From positions 71,424,001 to 71,488,000 of the forward strand of contig NC_134470.1 of assembly GCF_964194025.1 (NCBI RefSeq): a DNA stretch of 64,000 bases. Reading direction: 5' to 3'. The notes under the pieces are model-generated. The model was not told where the DNA came from. It saw nothing but the letters and a program-made list of their open reading frames with translations, and did no database searches. The translations under genes were made by a program, and so were the position numbers. Below, piece after piece: positions 8,698 to 41,457 of the stretch (position 1 is its first letter; each line of letters begins with the position of its first letter). The DNA is from Convolutriloba macropyga. Lineage: Eukaryota.

Positions 8698-9007
8698 TCA
8701 ATTTTCCATCTGATCGCGAATACGAATAAATTCAGCTCTTGCCAAATCATGTAGCCAGCCAAGTTTGCTGAAATTATCCATCTGATGTTTTCGAAAATAA
8801 GCACTAAGGCTATCAAAAGTAATCGCTTGATTTCCGAACTCCTGATTTAGACTGTAGTACTCCATTAAGATATCTTTAACATCACGCATCGATCTCACAC
8901 TCCGATCCCAGTTGCAAAAGAACTTCACTGCTTCTTTAAGCAGGACTTGCAACGTATCTCGGGGAACCAGTTGGAAATCGCGTTTACAGTCTGCTAATTG
9001 GCAATGC
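8698..9007 (-). CDS. Gene B terminal exon: HCQLADCKRDFQLVPRDTLQVLLKEAVKFFCNWDRSVRSMRDVKD...QMEN*
   Basis: Part of ORF 8698-9027; acceptor TTTTTAG at 9008-9009 (alternative AAG gives start 9019); aligns with gene A exon 3. Confidence 0.75.
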
Positions 9008-12000
9008 CTAAAAAGGCAACTTGGCAACCCCCGTGATTTCGGAGTTTTTTTTTCGAAACAGTCAAATTAGATTATTACCAAAAGGTTTAAGATACTTGAA
9101 ACAAAAACAATATACACAAATCATGCAAGCATTAATTAATACAGGGAAGCTCGGTAGTGTGTGTTTGTATATCAAGTTCCGCCCCCGCTTATCCAAATTT
9201 TTGACAACAAATGAGGAAGAGATAAGAAACTTCCATTAAATCACAAACTGCTCTAAAACAATCGCTAAACGAATCAAACTGTCTTAATGAGACTACGAGA
9301 CAACACACATAACAAAAAAAACAATTAAAATAATATATAGAGCAAAATGCAGCCCAACGACCTTGAAGCATCAGATAAGAATCATAAAATCAGATGAGCA
9401 CTGTCAAATGAGCGAGCACAAATAAAACCTCAATTGAACAAAAAAGAGAAAAGCAGCCTGGGCCAGTCCGTAACCCAACTAGGTATCAAGTCGACAAAAA
9501 GAAGATCAAAACGGGGCAAAGTTTTTAAAACTCGCATTTCTTGAAACATATGATTATAAGAAATCATTACGATAATGAAATTTGCACTGATACTGATTCA
9601 TGGCATAATTCAAAGTAAGTAATACAACTACAAAAAACCGCAAACACAGACATAAACCAAAAATTTAATCGAAAATTTTGAAAAAATTGAAAGCATTCAA
9701 ACCATCTTTCTACCGAAAATAATATAAATTTTCTAATTATCCTCTTTTAAACGCCCTTTGGGCCCGTCATTATCATAACTTTTCGACAGGGCACAGAAAG
9801 AAACTACAAATAATGGTCATAAATCAATTTGTGGAAAATACAGCCGGAAAAAAAACAAAAAAAAAAACAAATTTTGTTTCGCTAAAAAAGATGGGACTTG
9901 TCTTTAATTATGAGAGACTCAGCTACAAGTTGCCAGAGTTCCAGAATTAAGATTACGGAAGCAGCAAATTTGAAAAGAAACACAAAGTTTTAAAGTCATC
10001 AGAGCCGTCAGGTATCAATTGAAAGCAATAGATGTTTTCGCTTTATTATCTTTAACCAATTATTCAGACTATGACATAGGGTTAGAAAAAGGACAACAAG
10101 AGGTCAAAACTTGAGAAATTATTAAAAAACTTGATTATTATTATTATAATTATTATTATTATTATTACCTTGATTTTTTCCTGAAAATATGGACAGCGGT
10201 CCTTTATAGTCCTAATCTATTTCGATTGTAAAAAGAGTAGAATGAAATAGCTTTTATTACTGTGCCTCTAATGGAAACATTAAAATTCTTCCAAAATTTT
10301 TTACTATCAAAATTCTAAAAAAGCAGGAAAAACCTATTCCAGAACACTCCTATAGGAAGCGGGATTGCATAATTGGTTTTATGACCCCTTCACAAAATAT
10401 TATTTGTCATAATAGCAATGTTACTATTTCAAAGTTTCAGAAAGTAAATGCTCTTCGAGGGGGGGGGGGGGGGGGGAGAGTTATGAGTCATTTGCCCAGG
10501 AAGCTTAGCCACCGAAATAGAATAGATCCAAAAATTAACGTACCACTCTCGGCAGGTCCATTGTAATTGTGTTGCTCGGGTATTACCAAAGAAGGCGACA
10601 AAAGGGTACTGCCTTCGAACACATTGGGCGGGATCGTTGTTGCACTTCAACACGTACGGTAACAGATGATTTTTGAACATCCGATGTTTCACCCAGATTT
10701 CCGGAAAGCGACATGTTCGAAACGACGATATTTTCGTCGCGGACTTCGTTTCTAATCAGAAAACAAGTCAAAATTCAACTTTTTATTATTCAGGTGTTTT
10801 TTCAGGTAAATTCACCTAAACTTAGCATCATCTATTTTATAACTCCCCAGGTTGAGATTCAGACGAAAATTGGTTTATGATCAGACCCAGTCGATCAGCG
10901 TTCTGATCAGAGACTCATCTGAAGTCCGATAGCTCTGATCAGAAAGAAGGAGTCAAGCTGATACTAAAGGCCGGTCCCCTTCAGAGGAAGTTTTGATCAA
11001 CTGGAGACCACGAAGTTCCTTATGGAAAGCTGTCTTAACTCATCCATTGAGTCAGAAAAGTACACTCAGCGGTACACTAAAAAAATTTGGTGTCAATTGT
11101 TGGGTTTAGTTTTCTTTAGCAATACTTTTATAATTGATTTTTCCTTAGATGAATTAAATGCTGCAAACATCAGTTTTTATGAAATGAATATATTATAGCA
11201 AAACTAAGAGATTTGTTCATAAGTAAAATTTTTTTCCCAAAAGACTCATTCGAGCGCACTTGAGTCTGATCAGAGTCGGATTAAGGTCTGGGCAATGGTC
11301 TGAATTTGAGTCTGGACCATGGTCTGAAGATGGTCTGACCAGAACGCCTTCGGTCAGAAATGTCTGACCAGAGACCCTTTGTGTCTGGGAAGTCTGATCA
11401 GAGGCATCTTGGGTCTGGAAAGTCTGATCAGGGTTAATTTCCGTCTGGAAAGTCTGTTCAGAGATAATTTTGGAGTGAAAAATCTGATCAGACAAAAATT
11501 TGGATCTGGACCTCAACCTGGGTCAGCGCTTAGTATCTTTAAAAATTACACTGCCTTGATCTTTGCAAAGAATATCAACCTATATGACACTTAGTTCAAA
11601 ATAAGTAAAAGGCTATCTACAGTTTTTCTTTACACAACTTAAAGCCTTCTGTGTAATTAGAAGTAATCACGTGGTCCTCTACTTGAAAAGAATGTATTAT
11701 TTCTCGTTAAACCAATATAGTGTAACATTTCTTTTTTATTCAAACAGACATCGATTATAACAAACATTTGGATGCAAAAATTATTGGACATTTAATGTTT
11801 GGGATTATTTTGATATTGTTGTGCAATTCAACTGAAAAGTCATGAAAATTCTCCAGGAATTATTCAATGCGGTTTTAATCGAATTTGCGTGCTTTACGAA
11901 AAATGATTTTTTCAGAAATTTTTTTCAGGTAATTTGGTTTTAGTATAAATAATTCAATGCGTGAGTAGATAAAAAAACCAGAAGTAAAGACCAAAAGATT

Positions 12001-13709
12001 TCCTGAACTAATGTTTTCTCGGGGTTTTAGACCACGTTGAAAAGTGAACATGAGTAACTTTGCAGCATATAAAGAATCAAATAATCATTAAAAAATTCTG
12101 ATCCAGATTGAAAAAACACGTAGAAACGGTACGTTGCTTTAGGGAAATGATCATTTTTGAATGTTAATTCAAGAACCGACTAACTTTAGGGATTTTGACT
12201 GTTGTTGATTGATGTCTTTAAGAAACATTTTTTGACAGATTTTATATGAGATGACTGTTTTAGAACGGGTTATTTTAGTACATAATGAGCGGTTTTGATA
12301 TTTTATATCATAAAACAGCTCAACTTTCACCAGTGCTCTCTCATTTTTTGAACAAACTATAAGGCTCAGAGTATACAACGCAAAATGCTTTCTCAAAACT
12401 CGGAACTCTGTTTGATTAGAAGTAATCGTTCAGTCTTTCTCTTTAGATTGTTTAAAATGAATTTTTCATTGTTTCCTGTTTTTTTTGCTTAAATTTTTCC
12501 CATTATTTGTTGTTTCCTTCTTTAAAAAGTGACATAGGGTATAAACTACCAATCTACAAAAAATGTGCTAAGTTTATATGAATAAAGGCGGTTTTACCTC
12601 AAATTATGCCACATTATATTTTAAATTTTGAGTGATTCAAACTGAGCATTTGTAATTTAGTGAAAACTTCAACTTTAATCAAATGTTCTCACAAAAAACG
12701 TTGCGCATAACTTTTTTTGAGATCTCAATTTCAATGTTTGGTTCAACAGAAAAAACCAAAAATAACACCCGAGAGGTTTATAAAAGTTTTGCTGAGTTAT
12801 CGTTTTCTCACAGTATTAGACAGCCGTTTTTGAAAGGTGAAGTTAGGTCATTTGCCATTCTAGAAAGTAGTACATTTTCATTTCAAAATTCTTGATCCTT
12901 TTTTGGCCAAGACAAGTCAAAAACTGTCTTTGTTTCTGATCATGATTGTTTTTGATACTGGTTTTCCGGAATCTGCCTATTCTTATGGATTTTGACGCTT
13001 TTTGAGTGGTATTTTTAGATGGCAGTTTTGATAATATTTTTTAGAAGGCGAGCGTGTCAGATCGTTTTTGCTGTAAGCTGTAAGTCAAGGACTGAAACCT
13101 TTTAAAAGTCATTTTTGAATACCTAGTTTTTACATAAGATGCATTCGAACTTTTTCATGAGATGTGATCAATTTCTTAAAAATGTTTAAATTTCTCAAGT
13201 TCTTAAAATGATGAAGAGTAATTCTTCTGAATACAGTTATATTAGAGATTTATTCATTCAAAGACATTTTGAGCATCTGAAGAAAAAAATATTATTTTTC
13301 TTGGCTAGCAAAGCGCACTGAGAAGAACGCCACCTATCATCCTCATCTCATAACATTATTATAATACAACAATGTCAAAGATAAGAGAAAAACCGCTCAT
13401 TTTCGAAAAAAACTTGTAATTCTTTAAGTTCTGAAACAGTTGGAAAATTCATAGGTTAGTTTTAAAAATGATTTTTTACTAAAAAAATACCACTACGAAA
13501 GCGAAAATGCTAAGTAAAAAACGCTACTCTTTTCAGTTATGTGCGTTTTTGATTAAAAATGCATTTTTTGCTTATGTTTTCAGAAAAAGTGGGTTCTACT
13601 TACTTTCGAATTCACATGGGAAGATAAGTCTCAAGGTCGGCGTGATAACTTGCTTGCAGCTTGTCTCACAACGAGACCCAAAAATGTCGGCCGGGTTCTC
13701 TTTTTTCAT
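8698..13709 (-). CDS. Gene B: uncharacterised Cys-rich protein (~207-211 aa), 3 coding exons
   Basis: Exons 13709-13604 (ATG...A|GTAAGT, phase 1), 10751-10544 (ATTAG|AA...TG|GTACGT, phase 1/2), 9007 (or 9019)-8698 (TTTTAG|G, phase 2, TGA). Phases are compatible, there are no internal stops, and the product aligns with gene A. Confidence 0.75.
10121..10167. repeat. (ATT)n microsatellite
   Basis: Run of about 11 ATT units near 10134-10167. Confidence 0.8.
10544..10751 (-). CDS. Gene B exon 2: TKSATKISSFRTCRFPEIWVKHRMFKNHLLPYVLKCNNDPAQCVRRQYPFVAFFGNTRATQLQWTCRE
   Basis: 208-nt GC-richer island with AG acceptor and GTACGT donor; open frame overlaps ORF 10429-10692. Confidence 0.75.
10846..11522. 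mobile_element. Non-autonomous DNA transposon (CMC/EnSpm-like MITE), TCTGATCAGA family, copy 1
   Basis: Imperfect TIRs CCCAGGTTGAG...CTCAACCTGGG, flanked by TC on both sides (2-bp TSD). Many subterminal TCTGATCAGA palindromic motifs; internally deleted relative to 21507-22676. Confidence 0.75.
13604..13709 (-). CDS. Gene B exon 1: MKKENPADIFGSRCETSCKQVITPTLRLIFPCEFE
   Basis: ATG at 13709, consensus donor GTAAGT; matches the gene A N-terminus (FG..C...C..I.TPT....FPC). Too short for the ORF track. Confidence 0.75.
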
Positions 13710-14407
13710 GCGTGTCCCCAAAACTGGAATTGAACTCTTCAGATATGATCGAGCAATTGTTGCCCAATAAGCAAGTGATGGACCTTTTCAAGACATCTTT
13801 CCCTCTCTTACAAATTGGAAACACGATTTCTATATTAGTAGATTTAACACGAGTAAATTAGGTTGCAAGAGATACTAAAGTTTGCATAGTTCGAGTATCC
13901 CAGGATGCTGGTCATACAAATGTTATGAGTTGCTTTCAGCAAAAAGTCGCCAATCGCGAAAATTTGGCAAATTTTTTTGGGCGAGGTCTGAGTGCTTTTG
14001 TACTAATAAGGGCGACTGGAAAAAAATTGAGTATGGTCATGAGTTTAGTTTTATGAATGTCAAATATATTATTAGATGCCTCTTACAATGGTGCCCTAGT
14101 AATTGATTTCTCCATTAACGGGATCTGCGTTACCATACAAAGCTGATAAAAGTTTTCTTAAACATCAAATAAAACATGCGTGGTTTCTTAAGCCATACTT
14201 CCCGGTCATAAATGCTTTCATTCTTAGCATTCATAATTGTGTTCCCCTGTTAAGATTGAAAACCATACAAGAACAAATGATCTTGTTAACTGGAGTAAAA
14301 AAACCTTCAATGGCCTTAATTGGCTATGGTTATCTGCAAAACCAAAATATTTCTGTACAAAAATATTCCCACAATTGATTGAAGATGTAGAATGCTTATG
14401 AACAGAG

Positions 14408-16635
14408 ACAAGGATGCTCGGTAATGTGCGTTCGCACATAACGTTGTGACCCCGCTTGTTCCACAAGTGTGGCCTAATTGTCTAATAAACGATGAAGAGA
14501 TAAACTAAACTTTTAAAATAACTCAAAAAAATTGACAAAAATAATTGGTGTATGAATGAAAAAAATTCAAACTCCAATCACTAATTAAAGTAGCGTAAAG
14601 ACACACTGTTAGGCCAATGTGACCTGCCATTATTAAGACTACGAGACAGAACAAACACAAAAAATCAAATAACAAACATTTACATCCAAAATTCATTGTC
14701 TATTTTTTAAAAAAAAAAACTACGTAAAAACGAGTTCAAATGGTTTTAATAAAAACCTAAACCTTACAGTTTGATAAAATAGTTTGCTATCCTCAACTAG
14801 TTTGCTATCCTCTAGAGTAAAACGTGGGGCCAGACCTTGATGAGACTCGTCAACAAGTAGACAAACAGAACAAAAACGACAAAGTTAAAAAACATATGTC
14901 TATGTTTTCCTGAAAACAAACACATTCAAATAATGAAAATCTTAAGATTTAATTTGAAATCTTAATTTGACAAAGACATGCAAACGTTAGCTAGCAACTG
15001 AAATCCTTGATTAGGTTCCTTTTTTCTCAAACAGAAGCTATTAAAATTTTTCAATACTCTGAATATGTCAGAAGTCGCCCAAATAAACGATAAATAGATA
15101 AAAATCAGAAATAAAATAAACAACTTGCAACAAAAACTGGTATTGAAGCCATTAAAACCGTTAGCAATGCAATAAAAATCTTAGATATATTCTCTTGTTT
15201 TTCTCGTGAACACGATAGGCAAATGGGCTTTGATAGGCTTTGATAGGCAAATCGCAGATAGGCTTTGATAGGCAAATCGCAGTTAATGAGAATAGGTAAG
15301 AAGTAGACAAAGAGAACTACAAATTGTAAAACAAAAAAATATTAGTATTTGATTCTAAAGTCATAAAAACTTTAGCAATAAACGGAAATCAGAAAATGGG
15401 ATGCTTTGTTCTCGCGTTAAAAGCTGCAAAGAACTACATTTATCCAGTGTTTATCATTCAGCAGATCAAACTATTGTTTGTTTTTCCAAAAAAACAACAT
15501 CGAGGCCATTAAAAGAATAGGCGATCCACTAAAAATTTTCGTTTGATATTCAACCTGTACTTGTTCATATCCAAGCGAAAAAACCGTAAAGCCGCAACAA
15601 AACGTAAAAATAATGAAAACGTAAAACCGCATTGAGTATCATTTTTTTTAAATCAATAGAAACATGATGCGAACTGTTTTGCTGACCTTAAGCTACAGTT
15701 TGGCCAAAAAGGAGAAAAAAGTCTCGAAGATCAATAATCCATTGTTGATTTTAAAAAAGCATTCTTAAAAGTGAAAACGACTTTAAGTCATCTACTAAAG
15801 AACTAAATTGGCTTCCAGTTGGACCTTGAAGCCAATTGGACATGTTGTTAGTTCTACTTGATTGGACTGTTTCTTTTCTGTAATTAATGTAGGAAAAAGT
15901 AAACAAAACTAGGAAAACGATTAGACCAAGACTATCCTTGCTATTTCTGTTCTTCTCTTTGGAACACGTATTTGTTCTGATTCCTATTGATAGCTGTAAA
16001 TGGCTTGAAAAAGAAAGGTCAATATATCAAAAGTATATAACCTATTGCATAAATATCGAAATGATTTAGCAAAAAACCGGCCAATTCATAATTCAAGAGC
16101 ACTTGCAAAAGATGCATACGTGAAACTAGCTTTCTTTGGAGTTAACAAAGATTGTCTGAGACGTTTTGACGGGTGTTAACCCGGTCAATGTAAACAAAGT
16201 GGACTAAAGAAGCTTATTTTTTCCATTTTGGATGAAAATGCTGAATTTTGAAAAATTAGGCAAAATTTTTTGTCATAAAATTGGATCAACTAATTCAGAA
16301 ACTCTCTTTTGTTTTTAGAAGTAAACCCATCAAAACTATCGTTACAAATTTTAACTTATTTAAAAAAACAAAAGTGGCCAAAATAGCGTAAAGCCATGGA
16401 AATGAACAATAAGAACAAACGTCAATCAAATGTTCACAAAATTTCAAATCTCGATAACTCTGTGGAAATATGGAACTTTAAAAAAATCTTTTTCTAATAT
16501 ATTTTACGCTGGACGGTTTTTTTTGGTACCACACACAACCCTCTACGATGAATATATCGGTCGGCGAAAATTGACTGAACAAGAAAGCCCGTTGGAGTAT
16601 GTAGTTCCTCCCCCCACCAAAGTGGGTTTGAAAAA
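14408..16635. mobile_element. DINE-1/Helentron-like non-autonomous repeat (putative)
   Basis: Starts ACAAG followed by hairpin ATGTGCG-TT-CGCACAT (14424-14439) and GACCCCGCTT. Ends with hairpin CCCAC-CAAA-GTGGG and an imperfect inverted copy of that motif. Diverged relatives at ~23280, ~25600 and 27350-28285. Superfamily assignment is inference from the architecture. Confidence 0.45.
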
Positions 16636-20095: not shown

Positions 20096-20244
20096 NNNNN
20101 NNNNNNNNNNNNNNNNNNNNNNNNNNNNNNNNNNNNNNNNNNNNNNNNNNNNNNNNNNNNNNNNNNNNNNNNNNNNNNNNNNNNNNNNNNNNNNNNNNNN
20201 NNNNNNNNNNNNNNNNNNNNNNNNNNNNNNNNNNNNNNNNNNNN
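20096..20244. other. Assembly gap (N run)
   Basis: 149 Ns. Confidence 1.
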
Positions 20245-21223: not shown

Positions 21224-21335
21224 GATATTACACCCTTATCCCCACTAATTAGATGTGAATTAAGGGTGAAAATTCGTCCGGGGTTATCAGTGATAAAAGC
21301 AAAATTTTGTCTAGGCTGAAAAGGAAGCAAATTGT

Positions 21336-21437
21336 TTAAGGATGTTTTGATATTCCTCCTTGTTGCGGTGGTTGAACAGAAGCCAAGAGGTCTTGCGAAG
21401 ACTGCCCGCCAATAATTGATGCAATGGACTCAGGCGC
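21336..21437 (-). CDS. Gene A putative terminal exon: APESIASIIGGQSSQDLLASVQPPQQGGISKHP*
   Basis: TTTCAG acceptor, phase 0, GC-richer island ending in TAA. No homology support. Confidence 0.5.
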   Translation of the reverse strand, partial: APESIASIIGGQSSQDLLASVQPPQQGGISKHP

Positions 21438-27400: not shown

Positions 27401-30400
27401 AGTTCAGTAGGACATTCTTTAATTAAAAATCAAACATTTTAAAAAGTCAAGACGACCATAATCTTTTGAGTAAAGAAAATTAACAAAATAGTTTGTAACT
27501 GCTTAAAAACACAATTAGACCTATCAACTGAGAGCTTTGATTTGATTTTTTTTATAATTAACATAAAAAAGACAGACTGATTACGATACAAATTCCTTTT
27601 TGAATTGTAACAGTACAAAATTGGACCAAAAACAACCTTGCTATTGCTTTTTGTCAATTAGGCACACTCAATTCTTTCAAATATTATAGATGCAGATAAT
27701 TTGTTTAATTAAGGATCAAAAATAAACGCCGCGTCTGTGGTAATCATAGAGTAAAAAAGGCAAAATTTTAATTCCAGTCTACTCACAATGGAAGTGGAAG
27801 TACGTCTAGCTCCCATTTGTAGCTCAAACGTCTGTGTCAGTTGTTTTTGGGTGTGTACCTCCGGCAAATTTAATCAAAGTGGACCAAAAAAGCTTAGTTC
27901 AGTCAGTTTTGGTGAAAAAGGCTTCATTTTGAAATATTTAGCTAAAACTTTAGCCAAAAAAGTAAAGCAAAATGGTCAACATTACCTTTTGTCTAAAAAA
28001 ATTAAGAGTACTGTTGCAAACAATTTCTAAACATTTTAGCAAAATTGACAAAGTTCTAGGCAAAAATTCCGAAAATTAGAATGAAGATAACGCAAATCGG
28101 TCTAATATTCACAAAATTCAAACCACGATAACTCGCTCTAGAAAACAAAAATGAAAAAATCTTCTAATTCCATATTCTATGCTGGACGGGCTTTTTAATG
28201 ATAACACTCACAACTCTCCACTATGAATATATCGATCGGTCAAAATTGACTGATTAAAAAAACCCATTCGAGTATATGGGTCGGAACAATTACTTTTTTT
28301 CATTAATTGCAACTGAAATCATGCAACAGAAATCACAGAGTTTCTAATTGCAATAGCAAGATCATGCACGAAGTTCACTTTTGACTGCATCAAGCGAATT
28401 ATCTGCATATTTGCTAGAAAATGTTAAAATTGTCTTTTTTTTGGACAACTTGGTAACGGCTACAAATAGTCTAGGAATGATTTTGTAGATTTTTTAGTAA
28501 ATACTGAGTTTCAATTTAAAAACCAAAATTTCTCAAAAATCAAGTTGATCACAATCTTTAGTAAATAATGGCCTATAATGTAATTACACAATAAATTTTT
28601 TTTCCATTTATGTATAGTTAACACCACTCACGATAGCCGTTAGTGGTGTTATCTATACATAAATGGAAAAATAAATTAGTGTGTTATTACATTATAGGCC
28701 AATATTTATTGAAGATTGTGGTGAACAAGATTTTTGAGAAATGTTGGTTTCTAAATTTAACCAGCGACAGTTTTGACTGACCATACTTGAACTGGGCCGA
28801 GGTTTTAACGAAAAATAATGTAAGAATTACAGTAAATGGCGGTGAAAATATATTATATTTCACCTCAAAACACTCGACGGACTTAGCGGTGAACGAGGTG
28901 AAATTTTGTAGATGAAATATCAGCAATTTCGGTGTTGAATTTTGGTAACATTCGGAAATTTTACCTGTGAAATTCAATTTATCACCGCTTTGGCTGTAAA
29001 AATAAAAATTTTATTGCTACAAACCTCATTTCATACAATATTTTATAGAACAATAAATGCGGTGAAAATATGCGGTGATTTTTTGTAATACTTGATATTT
29101 TAAGTGGTGAAATATTTTTCACCGGATTTCACGCTTTCAACCGCAATTCTTGTGCGTTTTATGGTCTAATATGGTTTCTAACCATATAGGTTCTTTGGTA
29201 GGGAATGTAAGAAGGGTACGTACTGTTATGGTATCTTCCTCCTCTGGAATCGGCTGATTACCCGATGCACTGCACTGTTTGTACTGCTCAGCTTCTATAG
29301 CTTCAGGGGACAAGCCAGAAGATACTGCATAATAGGGCTCTGGTTCTACCTAAAGCCATTAAACCAAACTGCGCGTGTGAACAACAGTATATAGTATTAT
29401 ATCTAGTATATTATCATATGCCGACTGCATATGTTACTATACTATAGATATAATATCAAGTTTCGTTTTACGTAAAACGAAACTTGATACATCATATGCC
29501 AAGACATCTTGACTTCCCTTGAGAAGACCTTTGTTAAGCTAACTTTTCTTGATAAATACTGACATGTGTTGATAAAATATTAAATTTGTGGACACACATG
29601 CAACTTATACAATTTCGCGGTGTTTTCTTTCCAAGAATAATAAATTGGTTTTCAATGCATTATTTAGCCTATTTCTTCTTTTTGTTTTTCTATTTTGAGC
29701 CCATTTTTGTGTTTTATTCCATAGTTTCAGTCTACCATCACAGCAGTTTTTTTTTGGTCAATCAGCCTAATACAGTTCATTTTTTGAACGAGTTATGAGA
29801 AATTTTTTTGCCGTTACTAACACAGGCCTGCTCCAACAGAGATCTACCAAGATTTTGCTTGTTTCATGCAGGTTACGTTTACCTGTTAAAACGTATGATC
29901 AGGACGATTATCTAAGAACTTTGCAAGAGAGTAACCCAAAAGCTTTGAATAAAAGGATGCAAATTATCACCATACTTTTGTAGCTTATAGCTGGTAAATA
30001 CTATAGTAGTATACATATTTTATAAATCAGCTAGTTTATAGGCAATTACCACAAGTCCATTTAGCTTTGTGGTTACGACTTGCTACGCAAATTAAAAGTT
30101 CCAAGTACACACGTGGAAGTTCGAATCGCCTATGAATCAAACCTTGTTGGCGGGAGTTAAGCTGAGCATTTTTTTTTTCGTGCAGTAAATTTTAGTCAAA
30201 TATCAAGACTGGCCCGTGTAAATTGGGACATGAAAAGAGTACTCGTCATCTTAAAAAACAGAATGTCTCTATACTGATCCAGCGCTGATTTACTCTGGCA
30301 CCAACCTCCGGGAACGCTTTTAGTTAAAAGGAAAAGTAATTATAACTGAAATCTACTTAGAACATCTTTCCTACATTTTGAGCGTGATTTATGCTAAGGC

Positions 30401-33400
30401 TTGCAAAAATCTGAAAATTTTGACAATTTTAGGGTAATTTCAATCTCGTTTTCTCCGCTAAAAAAACTTGATGGAACCGTTGTTTGCCAAAATTGATACG
30501 CTACATAGTGACTGATTTTAATGGATAAAAACAAACAGAAATGAGCTTTAAATGAAGACCAAGTGCACGACTTGCAAACAAAGTTTTGCCAAATAAGATT
30601 TTTGGGATCAAAAGATTGAAAGGAAACTCCCAAATTTATCACAATCCCGAAAAAATTTACGAAAGGGTGTTTTCAAAAATCCAGAAATCGCAATGAAGCA
30701 CGATTAGCGCATGACTAATTTCTCTGATTTTATATGATTTCCAGAGGTATAGCCAGTAGAATTCTCCAAAAATTTGGAGTTTTCTAAGAAAATGCTCAAG
30801 TTTGTTTGAACGCAAAAAGCAAGTGTTTGCAATCAGAATGAGTTCTATCAATCAAAAAGTTCACTTTTAATGCAGAATATTGTATATTTTGAGATTACTA
30901 TAAGGTGCATCTCCAGTGATCAGATTGGGAATGAACGAAACGAGATGTTTTGAAAAAATCAGAAATTTCTAATTTGGACAAGGAATCACTTTGGGGTGCA
31001 GCACAATCATATGGACATAAATTGCTTGTTGGTCTTCCATTTAAGGCTAATTAGTAATATTGAGATATTACGGAAAAACATGCTTTTTCATGTCCTTATT
31101 TTTCATCAAGATAAAACATCTATGCAGTAATCGAAGACAGCCGGCGATAGCCTCCAAAAAAAGAGTGAGAGGTACTGTAGTAACTAGCATAGTTATATTT
31201 TACATCCGATTGAAAATGTATGGGCGATTTTGCAGCAGCAGTTAGGAAAACGGAAATCTTTCATGAAAAATTGTAAATAAATGTTTCAGAACATTGAAAC
31301 GTAAATGATGCTCATGTTGTGTGAAAAACTTGTGTAGATACTTTACGAGCCGTGGCGCTCAAACGCTAAGGACGCAGTGACCATAGTTTAAACGTTATTA
31401 TCGCTTTTTCTGATCACTTTGCAGTCGTGTGGTCATCATCGTGATAGCAATTGTTACGTCAGAGACGAGTTCGGATAAATACCTCAACCTTAGCATAGCC
31501 TTCATTTCAATGGAACTATGCAGAAAGATACTTAAGATCACTTATTTGGCAAACAAATATTCAAAAAGCATGCAAAACTTTAGGAAAAAACAAATGTTTA
31601 ACAAATTTCTTGATATACTAACCATCGGGGTTGGTCCATTTGTGAGAATCTCAATCAGAACCTCCAAATCTTTAATAGTGTTTACAGAGTCTTGGCGCCA
31701 ATGACATTTCTTTTTGAACTGTTTTCGGATCTCTTCCAACATTTGATCTCCGTTCAACAGCTCGAATGGTGGTCTGGACTCGTCGAAGTTTCGTTTTCGC
31801 AGCATGCAGCTTCCACTCATGCAAAAATGATAAAAATAATAAATAAAAAGTACTTGATTGCATTTCCTACCCGAACAAAATTATTTTTGTCTTCAAAAAG
31901 ACCTCTGCTTTACATAATCATCATTTGGTAATCTTCAGCATTACCTAAGCATCAATTCTGAAGATTTTTCTAGAAACTTCTTGAACTGTAGACGGGGATA
32001 TTTCTTCAGAAATAGGATATCTTAATTTCAGAGAAAAATCGTCTCTTAAATTTCACATACCTTCAGATCAAATTATAGTCGAAAGTACGAAATCACTCTG
32101 CTTGATTAACAAAAGACAATTAATTCAAACATGATTGTTGATTGACGGTCTTAAACCGTGTAATTGAAAAATCATCTTAAGAATGTAGCTCGAAAGACTA
32201 ATTTTTACACGTAATGCAAATGTTTTCAATCTTACTAACCTATTCTGAGAAATTTTTGTAGTGTTCGCATTTTTAGAAAAAAATTTTGTAACGTTTTTTT
32301 TGCAAGAGAAACATAAGTTTATAAAAGTTTCAATAAATTTTTTTGTAATGTTTCACCGTGTTTTGATTTTCGTTATAAATTTTCTTCTTGATCCTTAAAC
32401 ATACTCTGTTCTTAGAATGGTCAAGTTTTGCTTTGGCCTTATTTATGACGCAGACCGTTTTTTGAAGGCCTATAGGCTGTATGATTGATTCAAAGATTGG
32501 GTGGGATCCAAAGTTTTATACGAGTGAAAATTATAATTTATAAGTTATTGATCTGGAGCAAATTGATCTGGATCTGCATTTTTGTTACCTTGGACCCGAA
32601 CCTGGGTGGGAGGTATCAAATGTATTGAGACATCATTTTGGTTAGGACTGTTTATCGCATGTATTTTTTTATTCGGATGAGATTCAAATTTGTTTAAGAT
32701 GAACTCATTGGAATTTTTGAGGCAGAACTAACTGACATTTCCATGACAATTTTTCGTTCTCTTGAACTTCTGGATCATCCAGCGCAAAGTTGTCGTTCCC
32801 ATAGAAGGTGCAGTTACTCACAGAAGAGCAGACCAAAGACTTTGGGATGACTCCTATAAAATGACATACAATTTCGGGTATCTGCGTCAATGACATACAA
32901 TTTCGGATAAAAGCAAATATACATAATTCTACACTCAGTAGGTACATGGTTGAATTTTTGAGGCTTCTCACTTTCTAGTTGAAGATTTAATGCAGAAAAT
33001 AGCCCTCCGTCAACGGTAGGAGCCGAACCTCAATCTCCGCAGGCACCTTAACCTCGACGATGGTATTAACCACTGGACTATCAGGACCTTGTCATGGCGT
33101 CTCAAACAATCGGATATGTTTGAACAACAAACTTATTTTCGCAGTGGGAGCAATTGAAATCACTCAAAAATCAAGAAGAAGTGCGTGAAAAAGTCAGTTG
33201 AGAAGTCAAAGATTATTCTAGAAGAAAAGCACAAATCATGCGAAAAAATTGCATAAAAAGGACACAAGCGTTTACAATAATTGCGTCTCATTCGAGAGCA
33301 ATTAATAATTTTGTTTCTGTGTTATTGTAGTGGAACAGCATTAATCATTATTTTTGCAGTGTGTTATGTGCAGCCTGTTTTCAGCTGTCATTTTCTATAA

Positions 33401-36400
33401 TTTCCCGACATTTTTGACAGTTTGACGTGATTGACCAGATTGTGGTCGACACGAATCTATGGTTAAGTGAGCAATCATCATAACTTTTACTGCTTTAACG
33501 ATGAAAAAGATCGAGGTAACAATCAATTGCATACTGTGTAACGGCTGCTCTCCTATCAAAGTCAAGGAAAACTTTACACCGCCCAGTTCGTTTCAGCGGT
33601 TTCAAATCTGTCCGGATATTGTGTTTTTGCAGTTAACTTTTGTGAACTGTATTATCCGCTATACTATAGATTACCGTTGCATTACTTGTTGCTCTATTAC
33701 GCTTGATAACTAATTGCACAGCTTTGCTGTATAACAAACTTGTTTCTCTCAGAATAACAAAATAATTCAAATTGAAACAACCAAATTTTTTGTTGAGTTT
33801 TTGTTGATAACTCAACTTATAATTCGAAATTGCAAATTCTGCTTCTAAAAAATTGTTAAGGATGACTTCAAGTAACTGTCAACCAATTTTCAAATTTGTA
33901 GCGAACCTCCTTGTTAAGGGGGGCGCTTTTAAAGCAATTCAGATATTATAAATCTGATTCAAAATAATATACAACTTTCTGTTTCTCAATTGGCTTCAAT
34001 AACCACCAATATCAAAACTATGCTAGGCTTCGTTAAAACCAGTAAGAGCAACTGACTATGTGCTTGGCACAAAGTTTCTCTTACTTAGGAACTTTGTTCC
34101 TCAGAAAGAAAGTTTTGAGAATATCAAAGTTAATTCTCTTTTCACAAGTGAAAATTAAGTTAAAATTGTACAATCACTGAATTGATCTACAAAAACAAGA
34201 CACGATAACAAGTTATTTACCGCTCAAGAAAGTGTGCTTCAATACGCACTGTATGTCAATTTAACAAGACAAAATTAACGAATTTCATCTGATTTTTGTT
34301 AGTTTTTCAAGCTCCTTTTATGCTGCTAGTCACGTGGATTTACATGTCAAATTCAACTGTTGATTGGTTGTAGATAATAATGTCGACAAAATGTGAACAC
34401 TTTTCCATAACGTCACTTTTTCAGTGTAAATTTGATGTCATGGGAAATTTGTTAACCATGTAGAAGTTTTGTCGAATATTCTGTATCAATAACAGGTTGA
34501 TTCGCAATCCAATCGCAAAGAATCTGATGCAATACTGTTAAGTCGTAGTATTGTTTTGCCGGTGGTTTGAGGTAGTTCGAATTTGAGTTATAGTTTGACT
34601 TCATGAATGACGATTGTGTACTAATCATAGTTGCTAAATATAAATGTTGAACAACGTGAACAAATCCGTATAGCTTCGATAGAATGTAGCATCAAATTTC
34701 GCTTGTCACGCTATTCTAAACTGAACAGCTTGAAATGACCTTGAAGCGCTATTCAATTTGGTAGTTGAGGTAGTAAGCTCAGCCTCAACATCGCCGGCCC
34801 TGTTTTCCATCGTGAAAACATCTTTTCCAGGTAGTACTGGGGCGAGCTTCACTACTGGTCTCTTGCATACTCCGTCGTTTGTTCGAACTATCGCTGATCG
34901 AATCACACCGTCAGACCCAACGATGGTCTCCGTAACTCGACCTAGATTGTAATATCCACGCTTATCGCTGTCTTCGATCAACCAAACGAGATCGCCTTCT
35001 TTAAGGGTTTCGTTCGCCGTAGATCGCCATTTTTACCGATTATTAAGAGTTGGCATATATTCTTTACGAAATCTGTCCCATATGAGATTTGCATAGGCTC
35101 GAGTTTGTCGAAAGAGCTTTCGATGATCGACAAATTCTTCTGCGCATGGTAGATAGGGTAAGCAAACGTTCTTGTTGCCAAGCAAGAAGTGATTGGGGGT
35201 CGATGCTTCTAAGTCATTAACATCTGAACTGACTGGAGTCAAAGATCTTATGTCTGCTCAACAATACACATCGTTGTTGAAAGAACGTCCTCGGTGACTG
35301 ATTTGTTCCCCAACACTGCATACATTGCTTTCTTGCAACTTCTCACCAACCGCTCCCATAATCCTCCAAAGTGAGGTGCTGCGGGTGGGTTGAACTTCCA
35401 TCTGATCCCTCGTTGAATTAGATGTTCTTCGATCCCTTCTTTGTTCCATGCCGCAACGTACTCTGCAAACTCTCTTTCAGCTCCAACAAAGTTTGTCCCA
35501 TTGTCGCTGATGATCGTATTCGGTTTGCCTCTTCGAGCAATAAATCTCATTATTGCATTGAGACAACTATCTGTGTCCAACTTGGGTACCACTTCTATAT
35601 GCACCGCTCTCATAGTTAGACATGTAAAGAGACAACACCATCGCTTTTCGTTCCTTCGCCCAATCTTCACAATGAAAGGGCCAAAGTAGTCAACTCCCAC
35701 GTTTGTAAAGGCAGTTGAAGCATCTAACCGCTCTTCGGGTAGATCTGCCATTACTGGTGCTATCGTTTGTGCTCTGCCTTTTCTGCAGGTAATGCACTTG
35801 TTCTTGCTTGATCTTAAGGCGTTCCGTATGCCTAGGATCCACATCTTCTGCTGAACAATGTTTCTTACATGCTCAGTGCCCTCGTGTTGATTGTCCTTGT
35901 GCTCGTTTCGCAAGAATAATTCAACCGCATGATGTTTCCAATGTAGCAAAATTGGATGCTTTGCATTGAAGTCCAACTGACTTTTGCCTATTCTGCCTTT
36001 GGCTCGAATAAGTCCTTCTTCATCCAGGAAGGGGGAGAATTGTAGAATTTTGCTGACTTTTGGAATTTCCTTTTCAGCTTTGAGAGATTTCATCTCTTCA
36101 CCTTTTGCCCGTCATGAGTCCACTGACTACCCATCCTAGCTCTGTTAGAACGGCAAAAGGTTCACTTCGTGTTCCTATCTTGTAGTCCAATGGTCGTTGT
36201 AGCTCATAAGCATCTTGACCAAGGATGATGCCAACTTCCATCAAGTTGAAGCTTTTGTTGGGTAAAACACTCAAGTGGTTGAAGCTTTGCTTCAGCTTGT
36301 TGCAATTGTAGTTTGTGTTTCCCAAGGAGATTGACGGGTGTGCAGACGCTTCGATTGAATGCACTTTTGAATGTACTCCCTTTATTTTTAGAGGAACCTT

Positions 36401-39400
36401 TTCTGTCTTCAGATCCTTCGTTCCGTGTATGCCAGCTATGTTGAGCGTCACATCGGTGCCTTGGGCTCGTAACTTCTCTTGCACACTTTGATCGATGAAT
36501 GAAACCGTTGATCCACTATCGCGGAAAGCATATGTGTTCAGCCTGTTGCCACTGCTCTGTATTGAGACAGGAACTATCTGAAGAAAGCTTGTAACTTCGT
36601 TACTCTGGTTGATTGTTGCTGCGCTTACGTTGACTGCATGATTGCCCTCGTCCATTTGGTTTTCTGAGTGTAGCAATCGGTTGTGCTTCTTGATGCATCC
36701 ATTGATGCCGCACGCATTGACTTTACAATCTTTGATTGCATGCCCTTTGCCTAGACATCCGTAACATAAGCGTTGCCTTCTCACTGCTGCGTACCGATCA
36801 TTCACACTCATATTCCTGAATAGTGGACAGTTCCATAATTTATGAGTGCCATCAGCTAGTAGACAGTGAACACTTTGCGTTTGATTCGTTTCTTTCACGT
36901 TGGAACTTGCACTGAAGTTCGACGTTTTCGAGAACCGTTTGTCTCTATTTGTGCTTCTTCGGTCTTCTTCTCTTCGCTCTCCCTTGAAAGCTGAAAACCC
37001 TTCGTGCACGAAAGCAATCCTAGATAGCCATTTTTCAAACATAATCAGATCAAGCCAATCTTAACCTTTATCATCAACATAGAACCACCACTTCTCTTTG
37101 AGAACTTGGGGTAGTTTATCTACTGCCATATACAATGTCGAGCTTGATTGCAGATCACCAATCTGCTTGTACTCTTTGAGCACATTCACAAAGTTCGAAA
37201 CAATAACTGAGAAACTGATCAGACCTGTTGAGTCGTGTGGTTTCACCTGACTTGCTTTGCGAAGGCTCTCCAGTTGTGCATCAATGATCACATGAGGCCT
37301 CCCAAATTTCCTCTCCAGGATACTCCATGCAGCACCATAGAACTGTCCAGAATAGCCCATTCCAGAGATTGCTGACCTTGCCTTGCCTGTCAGTAGAGTC
37401 TTCAGATGGCTCATCTTCTCTGAGTCTGGTATTTGTCGTTGATCCACTGTAGCAATGAACATACTAGACCACTCCGGCCATTCGAGAGGGTTTCCGTCGA
37501 AGTTGTTCAACTTCAGCTGTGGTAGGTTACTGCTACCTGCGTACCCAATGTTATGTTGTAGTCGACCAGCTCTGGGGGAAACGTCCCGGTCTTCAGCACT
37601 TGAGGATCGGTCTCGTGAACTGCGATATTGTGAGAAGTGACTTTGCCTGTTCACTTCAGGGGTCCCATCGAAGCGAGCTGTTGATCGATCTGGTGTTAGA
37701 AGGTTGTCGATACTGCTGGCCCAGTCTGAGACATCTCTCTTTTTTGGGGTCCAGTTGAAGGGTGATTTGTCCCGAGCACCAGTTGATTGGGAACGAGCAT
37801 CATCGTTCTCTAATGCTGTTCTCTTCACTTTGCGCTCTAGCTCACGCTCTTCCTCCAGCAGTTGATGCTTGGTTTCGAGTTCCTTCATTTGCATTTCCAG
37901 CTCTAGCCTCCTCCGCTCAAACCGTGCTTGTTCGAGTCGCATCTTTGTTTCGAATTCGATATCGAATTTCTTCATCCTTTCCGCTCGCCTTTGCTTTGCT
38001 GAAGATGTTTCCGAAACATTCTCCGCCTCTTGGCCACTTGCTCTTGCTCCATTTTGCACTGTTTGAACAACTAGGATGTCCGTTGGGTAGTTGTTGTTGC
38101 TCTCGCTGTCGTTCACTGCTTGGGTTGCGTTGCTTTGCTCTGCATTCATTGCTGGTTGCGTCCCTTTGCTTATATATGAAAGCCAATGATAGTCCAAACT
38201 TGCTTTGCGCTTCCTTGCTTCTTTCAGATGCTCTTCAACGAAATTAACTTGATAGGGCACAAGCTTGTTTCGACGCTGCAGTTGCTTGGGTATTTCTTCC
38301 TCTAGAAGGTGAACAGTCTGTTGGTAGAGGACCTTTAGTTTGTTGGGTCGATCTGAGTCTTCAATTATTTTGTAGCCAATCGCTGTTTTAGTGTTGACTT
38401 CTTCCAATAAATCTTGGAATTTCTTGTCGTACCTTTGAGCTGCTGATTGAAGCTCCTCCCTGCTGGTTGTGCAGGGATTGCCTGGTTGCCTTTTGCTTTG
38501 CTTGTTCCTTTTAAGCGAGGTTAATTCTTCAACGTGTTTTGTGAATTGCACTCGCAACTTTCGGTCTGCCTCACTGGCGTTGCGCTGTTGATTTGTTTGA
38601 TTCTCTTTGGGGGGTGCCTTCGGCACTCTCTTCATCAGATTGGACAGCAGTTTGCCTTCCACTGTCCTGGTCGGCGGACCAAATGTAACGGCTGCTCTCC
38701 TATCAAAGTCAAGGAAAACTTTACACCGCCCAGTTCGTTTCAGCGGTTTCAAATCTGTCCGGATATTGTGTTTTTGCAGTTAACTTTTGTGAACTGTAAT
38801 ATCCGCTATACTATAGATTACCGTCGCATTACTTGTTGCTCTATTACGCTTGATAACAAATTGCACAGCTTTGCTGTATAACAAACTTGTTTCTCTCAGA
38901 ATAACAAAATAATTCAAATTGAAACAACCAAATTTTTTGTTGAGTTTCTGTTAATAACTCAACTTTTAATTCGAAATTGCAAATTCTGCTTCTAACAAAT
39001 TGTTAAGGATGACTTCAAGTAACTGTCAACCAATTTTCAAATTTGTAGCGAACCTCCTTGTTAAGGGGGGCGCTTTTAAAGCAACTCAGATATTATAAAT
39101 CTGATTCAAAATAATAAACAACTTTCTGTTTCTCAATTGGCTTCAAAAACCACCAATATCAAAACTACGCTAGGCTTCGTTAAAACTAGTAAGAGCAACT
39201 GACTATGTGCTTGGCACAAAGTTTCTCTTACTTAGGAACTTTGTTCCTCAGAAAGAAGGTTTTGAGAATATCAAAGTTAATTCTCTTTTCACAAGTGAAA
39301 GTTAAGTTAAAACTGTACAATCACTAAATTGATCTACAAAAACAAGACACGATAACAAGTAATTTACCGCTCAAGAAAGTGTGCTTCAATACGCACTGTA

Positions 39401-41457
39401 TGTCAATTTAACAAGACAAAGTTAACGAATTTCACCTGATTTTTGGTAGTTTTTCAAGCTCCTTTTATGCTGCTAGTCACGTGGATTTACATGTCAAATT
39501 CAACTGTTGATTGGTTGTAGATAATAATGTCGACAAAATGTGAACACTTTTCCATAACGTCACTTTTTCAGTGTAAATTTGATGTCATGGGAAATTTGTT
39601 AACCATGTAGAAGTTTTGTCGAATATTCTGTATCAATAACAGGTTGATTCGCAATCCAATCGCAAAGAATCTGATGCAATACTGTTAAGTCGAAGTATTG
39701 TTTTGCCGGTGGTTTGAGCTAGTTCGAATTTAAGTTACAGTTTGACTTCATGAATGACGGTTGTGTACTAATAATAGTTGCTAAATATAAATGTTGAACA
39801 ACGTGAACAAATCCGTATAGCTTCGATAGAATGTGGCATTAAATTTCGCTTGTCACGCTATTCTAAACTGAACAGCTTGAAATGACCTTGAAGCGCTATT
39901 CAATTTGGTAGTTGAGTTAGTAAGCTCAGCCTCAACATACTGAGCAAATTTTGCAAGCATTTCCAAATTTTTGGCCGATAATGCCACAATTGTAAATTTT
40001 TGCAATTGATCTCTTCACAAGATCTCTGATTTATTTAGCAATGTGGATTATTTTCCTTACTTTCCTAACTGTTTCTCGGAGATTGTTTAATTCAATTGAA
40101 AAAAGTGTAAATTACACCATGTAGAACGATATGTGTAAATATTATAATAAAATCATAATAATAAAATGGTGTAAATAAAATCACTATACAAGGCCAACTT
40201 CTAACGATAAGGAACAAAAAATTTTCAGGCCGGTTTGCAAATATTTAAGAAATATTGTATCATTTAACAAAATTTGCAAAATTCTTGGTAATTTATGGCA
40301 AATTTAATATTAAGTTTGGGGAGTCAAAAAAATGGACAACGAAAAGTTCTCATCTAACTTGATGCAAGTATTCTATATTACGCATACTTTATTAGAGAAG
40401 CTAACTTTGTTTTTAAATGAAGGTTGCGACAAAATCTCCAGGAGATCAGGTTTTATACACGAATTGGCGAAAACCATTAAAGTACATCTGTGGTTAACAA
40501 GAAAGTTTAGAGTTAAAACTTTTTTTCGTCATTTCTGTCTAATGCTTTTTTGATCAGACTGCAATTCCCTGGTATCTATACTGCTTTTCCTCCCTTTGGC
40601 AGAATCCTAGAAAAACTTGAAGAAATATTGCAAAATCAGCCCTGTTAATCAGATCTTTTGACACAGACTCAGTGGTACATTCTGTTTTATGGTTTAGTAA
40701 GGTTGAATTTGTTGAGCAATTAGTCAGACAGTTAACTCATTAACATTTATTGAACACTTCAATGTTTACTGTCTACTTGACCATAATAAATCAGTGCTGA
40801 AACATTGTATACCAATTGTATATCGTCTGCGGAATACTGTATCAGTGTATCCTAAGAGTATATTGCTACCTCATTATGTGCAGTCTATTCGCATAGGCAC
40901 TTTTTTTTCTGAAAATAGACTGAGCATTCTTGGTTTTGATTCGCATGATGTTCGTAGGAAAATCATGAAAAAATATGACCATTTCGAAAAAAAAAATGAA
41001 ATTTTGGACGACGCACTTTTTGAGCACGACGACGAAGTTACCATCTTAAAACATTTTAATCATTGTAAATAACGTTTCATTATCAAAAAGTACCCGCCAA
41101 ATCCAGCAAAGACACGCCCAGGCCCTTGAAATTTTCCAAAACCATGCAATTTGGGTCCAATTTGCCGATTTTGAAGTTTTAATTTAAGATTGTAATGGAG
41201 TATTGAATGAATGTTTAGGTTGTAGTTTTACATTTCAGATACAGAAATAACTTGCCTGTTTTGTAAAAGTAATTATTGAACCTCTCAATCCTGTCACATC
41301 TTCCTCCTTGCGTCCTCCCCTTTCCACTCTGAATTCCGCTGAGAGAGATACAGGGAAATTGAATCACACTAGTAGGTGTCCAGATAGGGGCAGGACAGTC
41401 GTCTTCTGACCGACATTGGTTTCCAAATACCTTTTTGTTATTTTTAACGTCACTCAT
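21336..41457 (-). CDS. Gene A: uncharacterised Cys-rich protein (~247 aa), 5 coding exons, paralogue of gene B
   Basis: Exons 41457-41256 (ATG...AG|GCAAGT, phase 1), 32853-32733 (TTTATAG|GA...CA|GTTAGT, 1/2), 31815 (or 31809)-31623 (2/0, ATG|GTTAGT), 29349-29224 (CTTTAG|...ACA|GTACGT, 0/0), 21437-21336 (TTTCAG|GCG...TAA). All four junctions are phase-compatible and similarity to gene B runs across the exon 1/2 junction. Confidence 0.68.
21507..22676. mobile_element. Non-autonomous DNA transposon (CMC/EnSpm-like MITE), TCTGATCAGA family, copy 2
   Basis: TIR CCCAGGTTGAGGTCCAG...CTGGACCTAAACCTGGG with TT on both flanks; arrays of ~30-bp units (tcgagcgcac...tctgatcaga); core shared with 10846-11522. 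Confidence 0.8.
22870..27340 (+). repeat. Local segmental direct duplication (~22870-24620 and ~25195-27340)
   Basis: Long colinear high-identity match (near-identical ORFs 23800-23982 and 26118-26229; same 41-bp internal duplication at ~24022-24105 and ~26341-26424). The second copy has ~310 bp extra (26533-26845) and a ~97-bp tandem duplication (26826-27019). Confidence 0.9.
25040..25191. mobile_element. MITE end fragment, TTCAGGT/ACCTGAA repeat family with ...TTTTAGTGTG terminus
   Basis: About 12 TTCAGGT/ACCTGAA-like motifs in both orientations ending in a CAC-type terminus; sits at the junction of the segmental duplication. Confidence 0.5.
28504..28764. repeat. Foldback (long imperfect inverted repeat, ~125-bp arms), MITE-like
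   Basis: ggcctataatgtaat...ttttccatttatgtatag.taacaccact mirrored by agtggtgtta.ctatacataaatggaaaa...attacattataggcc, centred at ~28635. Confidence 0.85.
28793..29150. mobile_element. Degenerate GCGGTGAA-family MITE
   Basis: ctgggccgaggtttt resembles the 18030 TIR; scattered gcggtgaa/caccg motifs. Confidence 0.5.
29224..29349 (-). CDS. Gene A exon 4: VEPEPYYAVSSGLSPEAIEAEQYKQCSASGNQPIPEEEDTIT
   Basis: 126-nt GC-richer open frame with CTTTAG acceptor and GTACGT donor; symmetric phase 0. No homology support. Confidence 0.6.
29394..29489. repeat. Two adjacent inverted repeats including a perfect 36-bp palindrome (29454-29489)
   Basis: tatcaagtttcgttttac|gtaaaacgaaacttgata is self-complementary; preceded by imperfect hairpin tattatatctagtata...catatgc-cgact-gcatatg...tatactatagatataata. 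Confidence 0.9.
30900..31392 (+). mobile_element. Decayed Tc1-like DDE transposase fragment
   Basis: Remnant motifs SLWGAA (cf. VWG), LIFHQDKTSMQ*SK at ~31095 (cf. FQQDNAPCHTSK) and LHPIENVWAIL at 31200 (cf. DLNPIENVWAIL). D and E lie in one frame ~33 residues apart; stops present. Confidence 0.7.
31623..31815 (-). CDS. Gene A exon 3: GSCMLRKRNFDESRPPFELLNGDQMLEEIRKQFKKKCHWRQDSVNTIKDLEVLIEILTNGPTPM
   Basis: Within ORF 31542-31820; donor GTTAGT. Acceptor is atypical (GAG, or AAG giving 31809; both phase 2). Confidence 0.7.
32733..32853 (-). CDS. Gene A exon 2: (G)VIPKSLVCSSVSNCTFYGNDNFALDDPEVQENEKLSWKC
   Basis: Within ORF 32705-32971; canonical AG/GT boundaries; aligns with gene B LLPYVLKC...C...FFGN...LQWTC. 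Confidence 0.72.
33002..33088 (-). mobile_element. tRNA-derived SINE head or tRNA pseudogene (putative)
   Basis: Minus strand GGTCCTGA-TAGTCCAGTGG (A-box-like) ... GGTTCGGCTCC (imperfect B box); no complete cloverleaf. Confidence 0.4.
33537..34790 (-). repeat. 3' LTR of BEL/Pao element
   Basis: Direct repeat of 38684-39937; preceded on the minus strand by purine-rich GGAAAACAGGGCCGGCGA. Confidence 0.97.
34706..36093 (-). pseudogene. BEL/Pao integrase plus C-terminal DUF5641-like domain, disrupted
   Basis: HEGTEH...CITC zinc finger, GVDYFGP, SDNGTNF, GGLWERLVRS (DDE), TPNHFLLG, GSDGVIRSAIV, RPVVKL. Frameshift at ~35245 and stop at 35033. Confidence 0.93.
36098..37042 (-). pseudogene. BEL/Pao gag Cys/His knuckles plus aspartic protease
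   Basis: CLLADGTHKLWNC, CYGCLGKGHAIKDC, CGINGCIKKHNRLLH; DSGSTVSFI; IILGQD; AVLTELGWVVSG. Confidence 0.92.
37061..38752 (-). pseudogene. BEL/Pao gag (coiled coil plus DUF1759-like region), ended by an in-frame TAA
   Basis: LPQLKLNNFDGNPLEWPEWSSMF...EKMSHLKTLLTGKAR...LERKFGRP. The reading frame continues past the stop into 36098-37042. First ATG outside the LTR is near 38635. Confidence 0.9.
38665..38681 (-). promoter_or_regulatory. Primer-binding site, probably tRNA-Tyr
   Basis: TGGTCCGCCGACCAGGA 2 nt after the 5' LTR. The implied tRNA 3' end ...TCGGCGG-A-CCA has G72/A73 as in eukaryotic tRNA-Tyr (inference). Confidence 0.7.
38684..39937 (-). repeat. 5' LTR of BEL/Pao element
   Basis: TGTAACGG...CTCAACA on +; about 29 substitutions and no indels seen versus the other LTR by manual comparison (~2.3%). 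Confidence 0.97.
41256..41457 (-). CDS. Gene A exon 1: MSDVKNNKKVFGNQCRSEDDCPAPIWTPTSVIQFPC...GGRCDRIERFNNYFYKT
   Basis: ORF 41215-41457 with upstream in-frame stop; GC-type donor AG|GCAAGT; homologous to gene B exons 1-2. Confidence 0.72.

Follow-up and report, generated by a model that had tools for sequence, protein, structure and literature searches.

What is encoded by two neighbouring groups of minus-strand exons, here called A and B, in the genome of the acoel Convolutriloba macropyga, and do they specify two proteins or one? The window, i.e. the whole stretch of 64,000 nucleotides (nt) that was analysed, corresponds to positions 71,424,001-71,488,000 of contig C3 (NC_134470.1) within the 1.18-Gb C. 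macropyga assembly, and the positions given below are window-based unless preceded by another label. Its base composition is AT-rich (~33% GC), with the exception of a 34-38 kb block that corresponds to a retroelement. The original prediction had described a hidden pair of paralogous genes for an unassigned Cys-rich protein family. The results presented here favor the view that A and B represent one domain in two diverged copies, which are, at least partly, expressed as a single secreted polypeptide. Taking all evidence together, we favor, with fair but not high confidence, a secreted disulfide-rich product of one or two tightly coupled transcription units that belongs to a Convolutriloba-restricted family.

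Both A and B are real multi-exon minus-strand genes, as predicted, and neither is hidden: both are already present as RefSeq models named "uncharacterized protein". The exons predicted for B (13709-13604, 10751-10544 and 9007-8701) have GT..AG borders, and the spliced product of 207 amino acids (aa) is identical to RefSeq XP_075242538.1 (LOC142337266). No sequencing run carries an RNA label; run X6 (80 Mb) was taken as RNA because its contigs are spliced and its depth is restricted to exons. Over B, the X6 depth is confined to the exons and drops to zero in the introns. The two junctions predicted for B, 13604/10751 and 10544/9007, are both spliced in one 1599-nt minus-strand X6 contig that contains the pieces 13786-13604, 10751-10543 and 9006-8640. 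Exon 1 of B (13604-13786) has its acceptor at ~13784/13783 (AAAAG/GT) and includes the RefSeq start codon at 13709; the 25 codons located 5' of this ATG are open and in frame with A. Exon 2 spans positions 10544-10751, and exon 3 (8698-9007) contains the stop codon at 8700-8698, with the transcript reaching at least to 8640. All six junctions named for A and B in the original prediction have usable minus-strand splice signals, five of them GT..AG and one GC..AG.

Gene A corresponds to RefSeq XP_075241751.1 (LOC142336724; here P0003), an uncharacterized protein of 286 aa, whereas the five exons that had been drawn for A give 247 aa. Apart from a wrong 5' end and one junction residue the two models are the same. 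Two upstream exons had been overlooked, 46714-46625 and 43651-43601. Exon 1 (46625-46714) comprises 30 codons, including the start codon and a signal peptide, corresponds to P0003 residues 1-30 and has a GT donor; exon 2 (43601-43651) comprises 17 codons and has a GA donor, and a tblastn search with P0003 residues 31-47 gave a 100% identical match. A second allele of the A locus, 85-97% identical, is present on an ENA contig (locus L035). In this allele exon 1 is kept with 7 substitutions and exon 2 is identical, with the GA donor retained. Exon 3 (41256-41430), which has a GC donor, encodes an N-subdomain with the pattern FGxxC..C..TPT..FPC. Since this exon begins at 41430 in the RefSeq-matched model, the ATG at 41457 that had been proposed as the start of A is intronic. 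Exon 4 (32733-32853) encodes IPKSL.C...C..FYGN...WKC, and exon 5 (31623-31815), which differs by one aa from the L035 allele, encodes the Cys residues of a β-hairpin and a helix with a C-H-W motif. Exon 6 (29224-29349) encodes an acidic disordered tail or linker, modelled with a predicted local distance difference test score (pLDDT) below 50. Exon 7 (21336-21437) contains the stop codon at 21338-21336 and an internal alternative GA donor near 21359-21362. Three of the junctions predicted for A (41256/32853, the one with the GC donor; 31623/29349; and 29224/21437) agree with RefSeq. At 32733/31815 the two models differ by one residue: RefSeq, in which the end of exon 4 differs by one base (..KCQ), reads ..KCQSGSC.. 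where the prediction reads ..KCHGSC... The predicted border is a canonical GT..AG one, while that of RefSeq implies a non-canonical intron.

The proposed homology between the A and B products was borne out by three approaches; the related region covers ~130-170 aa and has conserved Cys residues. BLASTP aligned the two spliced products with an E-value of 6e-5 and 22% identity over 193 columns. The Smith-Waterman score was 76, against 31 ± 4.6 in 1000 shuffles (z 9.6), so that the pairwise alignment is significant by the shuffle test as well. Finally, comparison of the A-type with the B-type profile, paralogs included, by hhalign gave 97.1% probability and an E-value of 6.1e-11 over 130 columns. 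The domain profile work was based on alignment A2; alignment A4 was also used for checks of Cys columns and His. Nine Cys columns and the motifs TPT, FPC, F[FY]GN, WxC and CxW are common to A and B, and the C-terminal tails are unrelated, both as predicted. The layout of each domain consists of the short N-subdomain (FGxxC..C..TPT..FPC), a Cys-rich middle ending in a WxC....C β-hairpin, and at least two helices, the first of which terminates in C-[NHD]-W.

The first exon of A bears on where these proteins function. Classical secretory signal peptides have a positively charged n-region, a hydrophobic core of 7-15 residues and small residues at -3 and -1. By inspection, P0003 residues 1-23 have these features: Lys7 in the n-region, an 11-residue hydrophobic core (FFPIFLIIFLL), and C-S-A in front of the likely cleavage site. 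Thus, the statement that no signal peptide is visible does not hold for A, whose true first exon encodes one with n-, h- and c-regions, and it was because this exon was missed that metal binding had been preferred over disulfides. The signal peptide, the even Cys count and the absence of a conserved His in A2 and A4 together make disulfides far more likely than metal sites. We regard a secreted and disulfide-bonded protein as somewhat probable. The RefSeq model of B is without a signal peptide, and a search for a signal-peptide exon upstream of B or of its paralog D (see below) gave nothing convincing.

Evidence that A and B are connected at the RNA level came from the X6 contig mentioned above. 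This contig extends 840 nt upstream of the B pieces, and the last 30 nt of this part map uniquely to positions 21362-21391, in A exon 7. The join leaves A 22 nt ahead of its stop codon and enters B exon 1 in frame via a GA..AG intron, so that translation across it reads ...VQPPQQ/G PSLAYW...LGTR MKKENPAD.... The 840 nt equal the coding sequence of A up to the join point (832-835 nt) plus 5-8 nt, and hence the contig very probably holds the complete A upstream of B. The predicted A-B fusion protein is 511 aa long; removal of the signal peptide would leave 488 aa with 20 Cys. A colinear transcript upstream of 13786 was not seen in X6, i.e. in one RNA sample, and there is accordingly no sign of an independent B start in X6. 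A exon 7 and B exon 1 are separated by non-coding DNA that contains an assembly gap (a run of N at 20096-20244); no exon is affected by it. As the RNA contig joins 21362 to 13786, the flanks of this gap belong to one transcript and have the same orientation.

The non-canonical introns of the locus have GA donors at 43600 and ~21361 and a GC donor at 41255, with acceptors at 41431 and ~13784 for the GA..AG introns. In the second allele, gene A retains its GA and GC donors. Intron 2 of A, which the RefSeq protein requires, has the same AG/GA ... AAAAG/GT appearance as the A-B intron. A literature search on non-canonical splicing in acoels and on the C. macropyga genome yielded only the genome note (PMC13650328) and unrelated papers. 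GA..AG and GC..AG introns of the C. macropyga genome may systematically be missed by gene predictors.

Are A and B part of a larger family? When the whole assembly was searched in six frames, with four exons serving as queries, relatives were identified only at C3 71.42-71.57 Mb, all on the minus strand, and on three small contigs. Two of these contigs (C4431 and C2105) are likely haplotigs, being 92-97% identical, and the third (C730) gave one exon-2-type match. In the direction of transcription the order of the units on C3 is F (B-type), E (B-type), D (A-type), C (B-type), A, B and a broken B exon 3. Identity is 45-56% among the A-type units and 34-37% among the B-type units, but ~23% when A-type is compared with B-type. 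An exon-1-type N-subdomain was not found in paralogs C, E and F with regular expressions or a hidden Markov model. The family is a small, local and fast-diverging tandem cluster of about six units rather than a dispersed repeat. RefSeq XP_075241752.1 (P0002; LOC142336725) joins an A-type exon to B-type exons just as the X6 contig does: its first residue is a Met within exon 3 of paralog D, and exons 2 and 3 of paralog C make up the rest (pieces L023:7072-7260, L021:7997-8194 and L021:461-736). For two residues at its joint (FA) no genomic position could be assigned, and the model probably represents only part of a two-domain D-C gene. The predicted origin of A and B as two genes by tandem duplication is thus only part of the account, since A is spliced in frame to B in an RNA contig and D and C are likewise joined in RefSeq. 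It seems rather that an A-type and a B-type domain form one unit, and that this two-domain unit has undergone duplication in turn.

Two further features of the cluster lie outside the window. A tandem array with a period of ~723 bp, noticed as a recurring short open reading frame (ORF), occupies C3 ~71498000-71510000 (L021-L023), 10-22 kb past the window end; it is situated between paralogs D and C, in the intron that XP_075241752.1 would span. The partial duplicate of B exon 3 is located at C3:71421129-71421480 (L002/L003), 2.5-2.9 kb before the window. Its protein identity to B exon 3 is 90-98%, a frameshift and two TAA stops interrupt its reading frame, and neither exon 1 nor exon 2 was detected nearby; it appears to be a pseudogene remnant of a local segmental duplication.

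Comparison of alleles provided information on selection. The first five coding exons of A differ from L035 at 2.7% of sites, and the aligned non-coding DNA at ~5.3%. The 12 amino-acid changes affect no Cys, and every splice signal is kept. The ratio of nonsynonymous to synonymous substitution rates (dN/dS) between the A alleles is 0.63 overall and 0.42 for the mature part. In DNA runs from other samples, variants were present in B exon 2 at positions 10575, 10687 and 10744, and all three are nonsynonymous (A>T, K>N and K>N). The predicted purifying selection is supported insofar as dN/dS is below 1 and exons diverge less than introns, but it is weak, given the values of 0.42-0.63 and the exclusively nonsynonymous variants of B exon 2. 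Outside the Cys scaffold constraint is weak, which fits a fast-evolving secreted protein and not strong purifying selection.

In the original prediction the domain had not been recognised and had been suggested to be perhaps lineage-specific or undescribed, and this agrees with our searches. Neither single exons nor full proteins of any member gave a Pfam match above cutoff. A word-based search of 5.8e9 proteins, one run of which used as query the early alignment A1 in which the A-type exons were misplaced (A1 was afterwards replaced by A2), returned C. macropyga sequences only, namely four RefSeq "uncharacterized" proteins and ENA single-exon ORF calls. The RefSeq entries (LOC142336724, LOC142337266, LOC142336725 and LOC142358351) are the window genes themselves or their paralogs. 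Similarly, an exhaustive HMMER search of 1.84e9 representatives with the family profile gave six matches, all of them C. macropyga fragments or paralogs. As the coverage of acoels in these libraries is thin, "Convolutriloba-specific" means here that there is no detectable relative among public sequences. Sequence searches of the PDB returned just 30S ribosomal protein S24e (E-value 0.54) and saposin (E-value 0.15), and the best score in an ESM Atlas feature search was a meaningless 0.76.

Structure models were obtained with AlphaFold2 from a nine-row alignment. The B model has a pLDDT of 63.5 and is usable for residues 58-207; it contains a β-hairpin (98-111) bearing the WxC....C motif, followed by four helices. 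The A model has a pLDDT of 49.5 and shows, at residues 141-206, a core of a hairpin and two helices as in B. The A tail (residues 208-286) is modelled as disordered and is acidic (isoelectric point 4.2), as expected of an interdomain linker. Searches with the B model by Foldseek against PDB and AFDB clusters, by VIA-align against 48,161 PDB representatives and in the Atlas revealed no similar fold, with E-values of at least 0.6, Z-scores of at most 4.0 and TM values of at most 0.32. Lineage-restricted secreted Cys-rich proteins of invertebrates form a general class, to which the family is alike in its signal peptide, even Cys number, small multi-exon genes, fast-diverging tandem cluster and lack of outside homologs. 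It differs from this class in that its unit seems to hold two diverged domain copies (22-24% identity) joined by a disordered linker, and no relationship with a named family was detectable from sequence or structure.

A BEL/Pao-type long terminal repeat retroelement is present on the minus strand at 33537-39935, in intron 3 of A. Its ORFs encode gag (DUF1759), a zinc-knuckle/protease-like product, integrase (rve and Integrase_H2C2) and DUF5641; it has no reverse-transcriptase ORF. The L035 allele joins 39936 directly to 33536, demonstrating that the insertion is polymorphic and not part of the gene. Two other repetitive stretches, 10767-11554 in B intron 1 and 14313-14500 upstream of B, have word depths of 1e4-1e5 in DNA runs, compared with ~30 for single-copy sequence, and are very high-copy repeats with many internal rearranged joints.

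Several observations weigh against a single secreted A-B protein. The fusion is based on one assembled contig from one small run with an unrecorded library type, and of its 840-nt upstream part just 30 nt are visible. The A-B intron is non-canonical and has a 4-nt microhomology (AAGG), and reverse-transcriptase template switching can yield such microhomology joins. RefSeq keeps A and B separate, with A ending at its own stop. In addition, the signal peptide was called by sequence inspection and not by a predictor, the function is wholly inferred, and the structure models are moderate or poor, so that the claim of no known fold is weak. The points on the junction would be accounted for if A and B were independent genes, with A being secreted, B being translated from the ATG at 13709 without a signal peptide, and the junction reflecting minor read-through or a cDNA artefact. 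The separate models XP_075241751.1 and XP_075242538.1, the in-frame A stop 22 nt past the alternative donor and the AAGG microhomology are all in line with this possibility. However, the sole RNA contig over B exon 1 runs on into A, with none colinear upstream of 13786, reading continues in frame across the splice, and no stop interrupts the 25 codons ahead of the B start. Moreover, a second GA..AG intron of the same appearance occurs between A exons 2 and 3, is RefSeq-required and is kept in the second allele, which argues against an artefact, and the paralogous D-C pair is joined in RefSeq too. Nor is a domain with 10 Cys and a secreted homolog likely to fold in the cytosol. We consequently regard independence of the two genes as rather unlikely, though it is the alternative to which we give most weight.

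The remaining alternatives concern the nature of the domain, and all of them are less probable. It might be a highly diverged saposin-like (SAPLIP) module that interacts with lipids or membranes, in which case the protein would be antimicrobial or lytic on membranes. The sole PDB sequence matches of the family profile, prosaposin and saposin A (E-value 0.15; PDB 7p4t and 5nxb), extend over the helix ending in C-[NDE]-W, P0002 matched SapB_1 (E-value 0.011, 16.2 bits), and the predicted secretion, helices and disulfides are saposin-like traits. The SapB_1 score is below the Pfam cutoff of 25.2 bits, though, and P0001, P0003 and the members when scanned singly gave no match to SapB_1 or SapB_2. 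The saposin fold is a compact bundle of 4-5 helices; no saposin occurred among the Foldseek, VIA-align or Atlas matches of the B model with its pLDDT of only 63.5. Saposins have six Cys forming three disulfides within ~80 aa in the pattern C-x2-C ... C ... C ... C-x5-C. The Cys of the second half (C4-C6) are absent from the Convolutriloba domain, which in A2 and A4 shows C-x4-C, then C-x-W 24-29 residues on, and no conserved Cys beyond, and which has an extra N-terminal Cys-rich part and a β-hairpin. We thus consider a saposin relationship improbable. Still less probable is an intracellular, zinc-finger-like family with the metal binding originally proposed. Many Cys do occur at short spacings (C-x3-5-C and C-x4-C), and the B model of RefSeq starts without a signal peptide, but A bears one, and B is reached from the secreted A by RNA splicing; besides, there is no conserved His column, no zinc-finger or other Pfam match, and the Cys number per mature product is even. 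Least probable is that A and B are transposon-borne accessory genes or decaying pseudogenes. The BEL/Pao element within A and the broken B exon 3 copy just beyond the window might suggest as much, yet in the whole-genome six-frame searches the copies were restricted to a single 150-kb cluster and haplotigs, the retroelement is an intronic insertion that is polymorphic and missing from the second allele, and A and B have intact reading frames that are spliced and expressed.

According to the reading that we prefer, the locus would constitute either a single transcription unit or a tightly coupled pair, and the gene family to which it belongs would be restricted to Convolutriloba. The product would begin with a cleavable signal peptide. 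The A-type Cys-rich domain (~residues 48-207) would come next, and a disordered linker that is acidic and rich in Pro, Gln and Ser would connect it to its B-type homolog, which is likewise Cys-rich and carries a helical extension at the C-terminus. The nine conserved Cys of each domain would pair as disulfides in the secretory pathway, and the presumed site of action is extracellular. The family diverges rapidly and is polymorphic, which would be less expected of a housekeeping protein than of a gland-secreted effector directed against prey, microbes or algal symbionts. Our best guess is an extracellular gland-secreted effector or a structural secretion, with much lower confidence in any specific role than in secretion and disulfide bonding. 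More tentatively, and with doubts about its several parts taken together, the domain could be a Convolutriloba-specific, previously unseen disulfide-stapled fold (an N-terminal Cys knot-like part, a β-hairpin and helices) that occurs twice in one secreted protein spliced across two RefSeq genes via GA..AG introns, with the rapidly diversifying tandem family acting as extracellular effectors toward symbionts, prey or microbes in an acoel that is both photosymbiotic and predatory.

In summary, this is an ordinary lineage-restricted secreted Cys-rich family that is already in RefSeq as uncharacterized proteins, and it has no medical or broad mechanistic significance at present. Two features make it mildly interesting: a two-domain gene has probably been split wrongly in the annotation, and introns of the GA..AG and GC..AG types are in use. 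For annotation, this means that adjacent models probably represent one gene and that such introns are penalised by gene predictors. Acoels hold a key place in animal phylogeny, and hardly any work has been devoted to the secreted proteins specific to their lineage; the locus described here offers a clean, testable orphan family of disulfide-rich domains that combines internal duplication, tandem expansion and allelic diversity.

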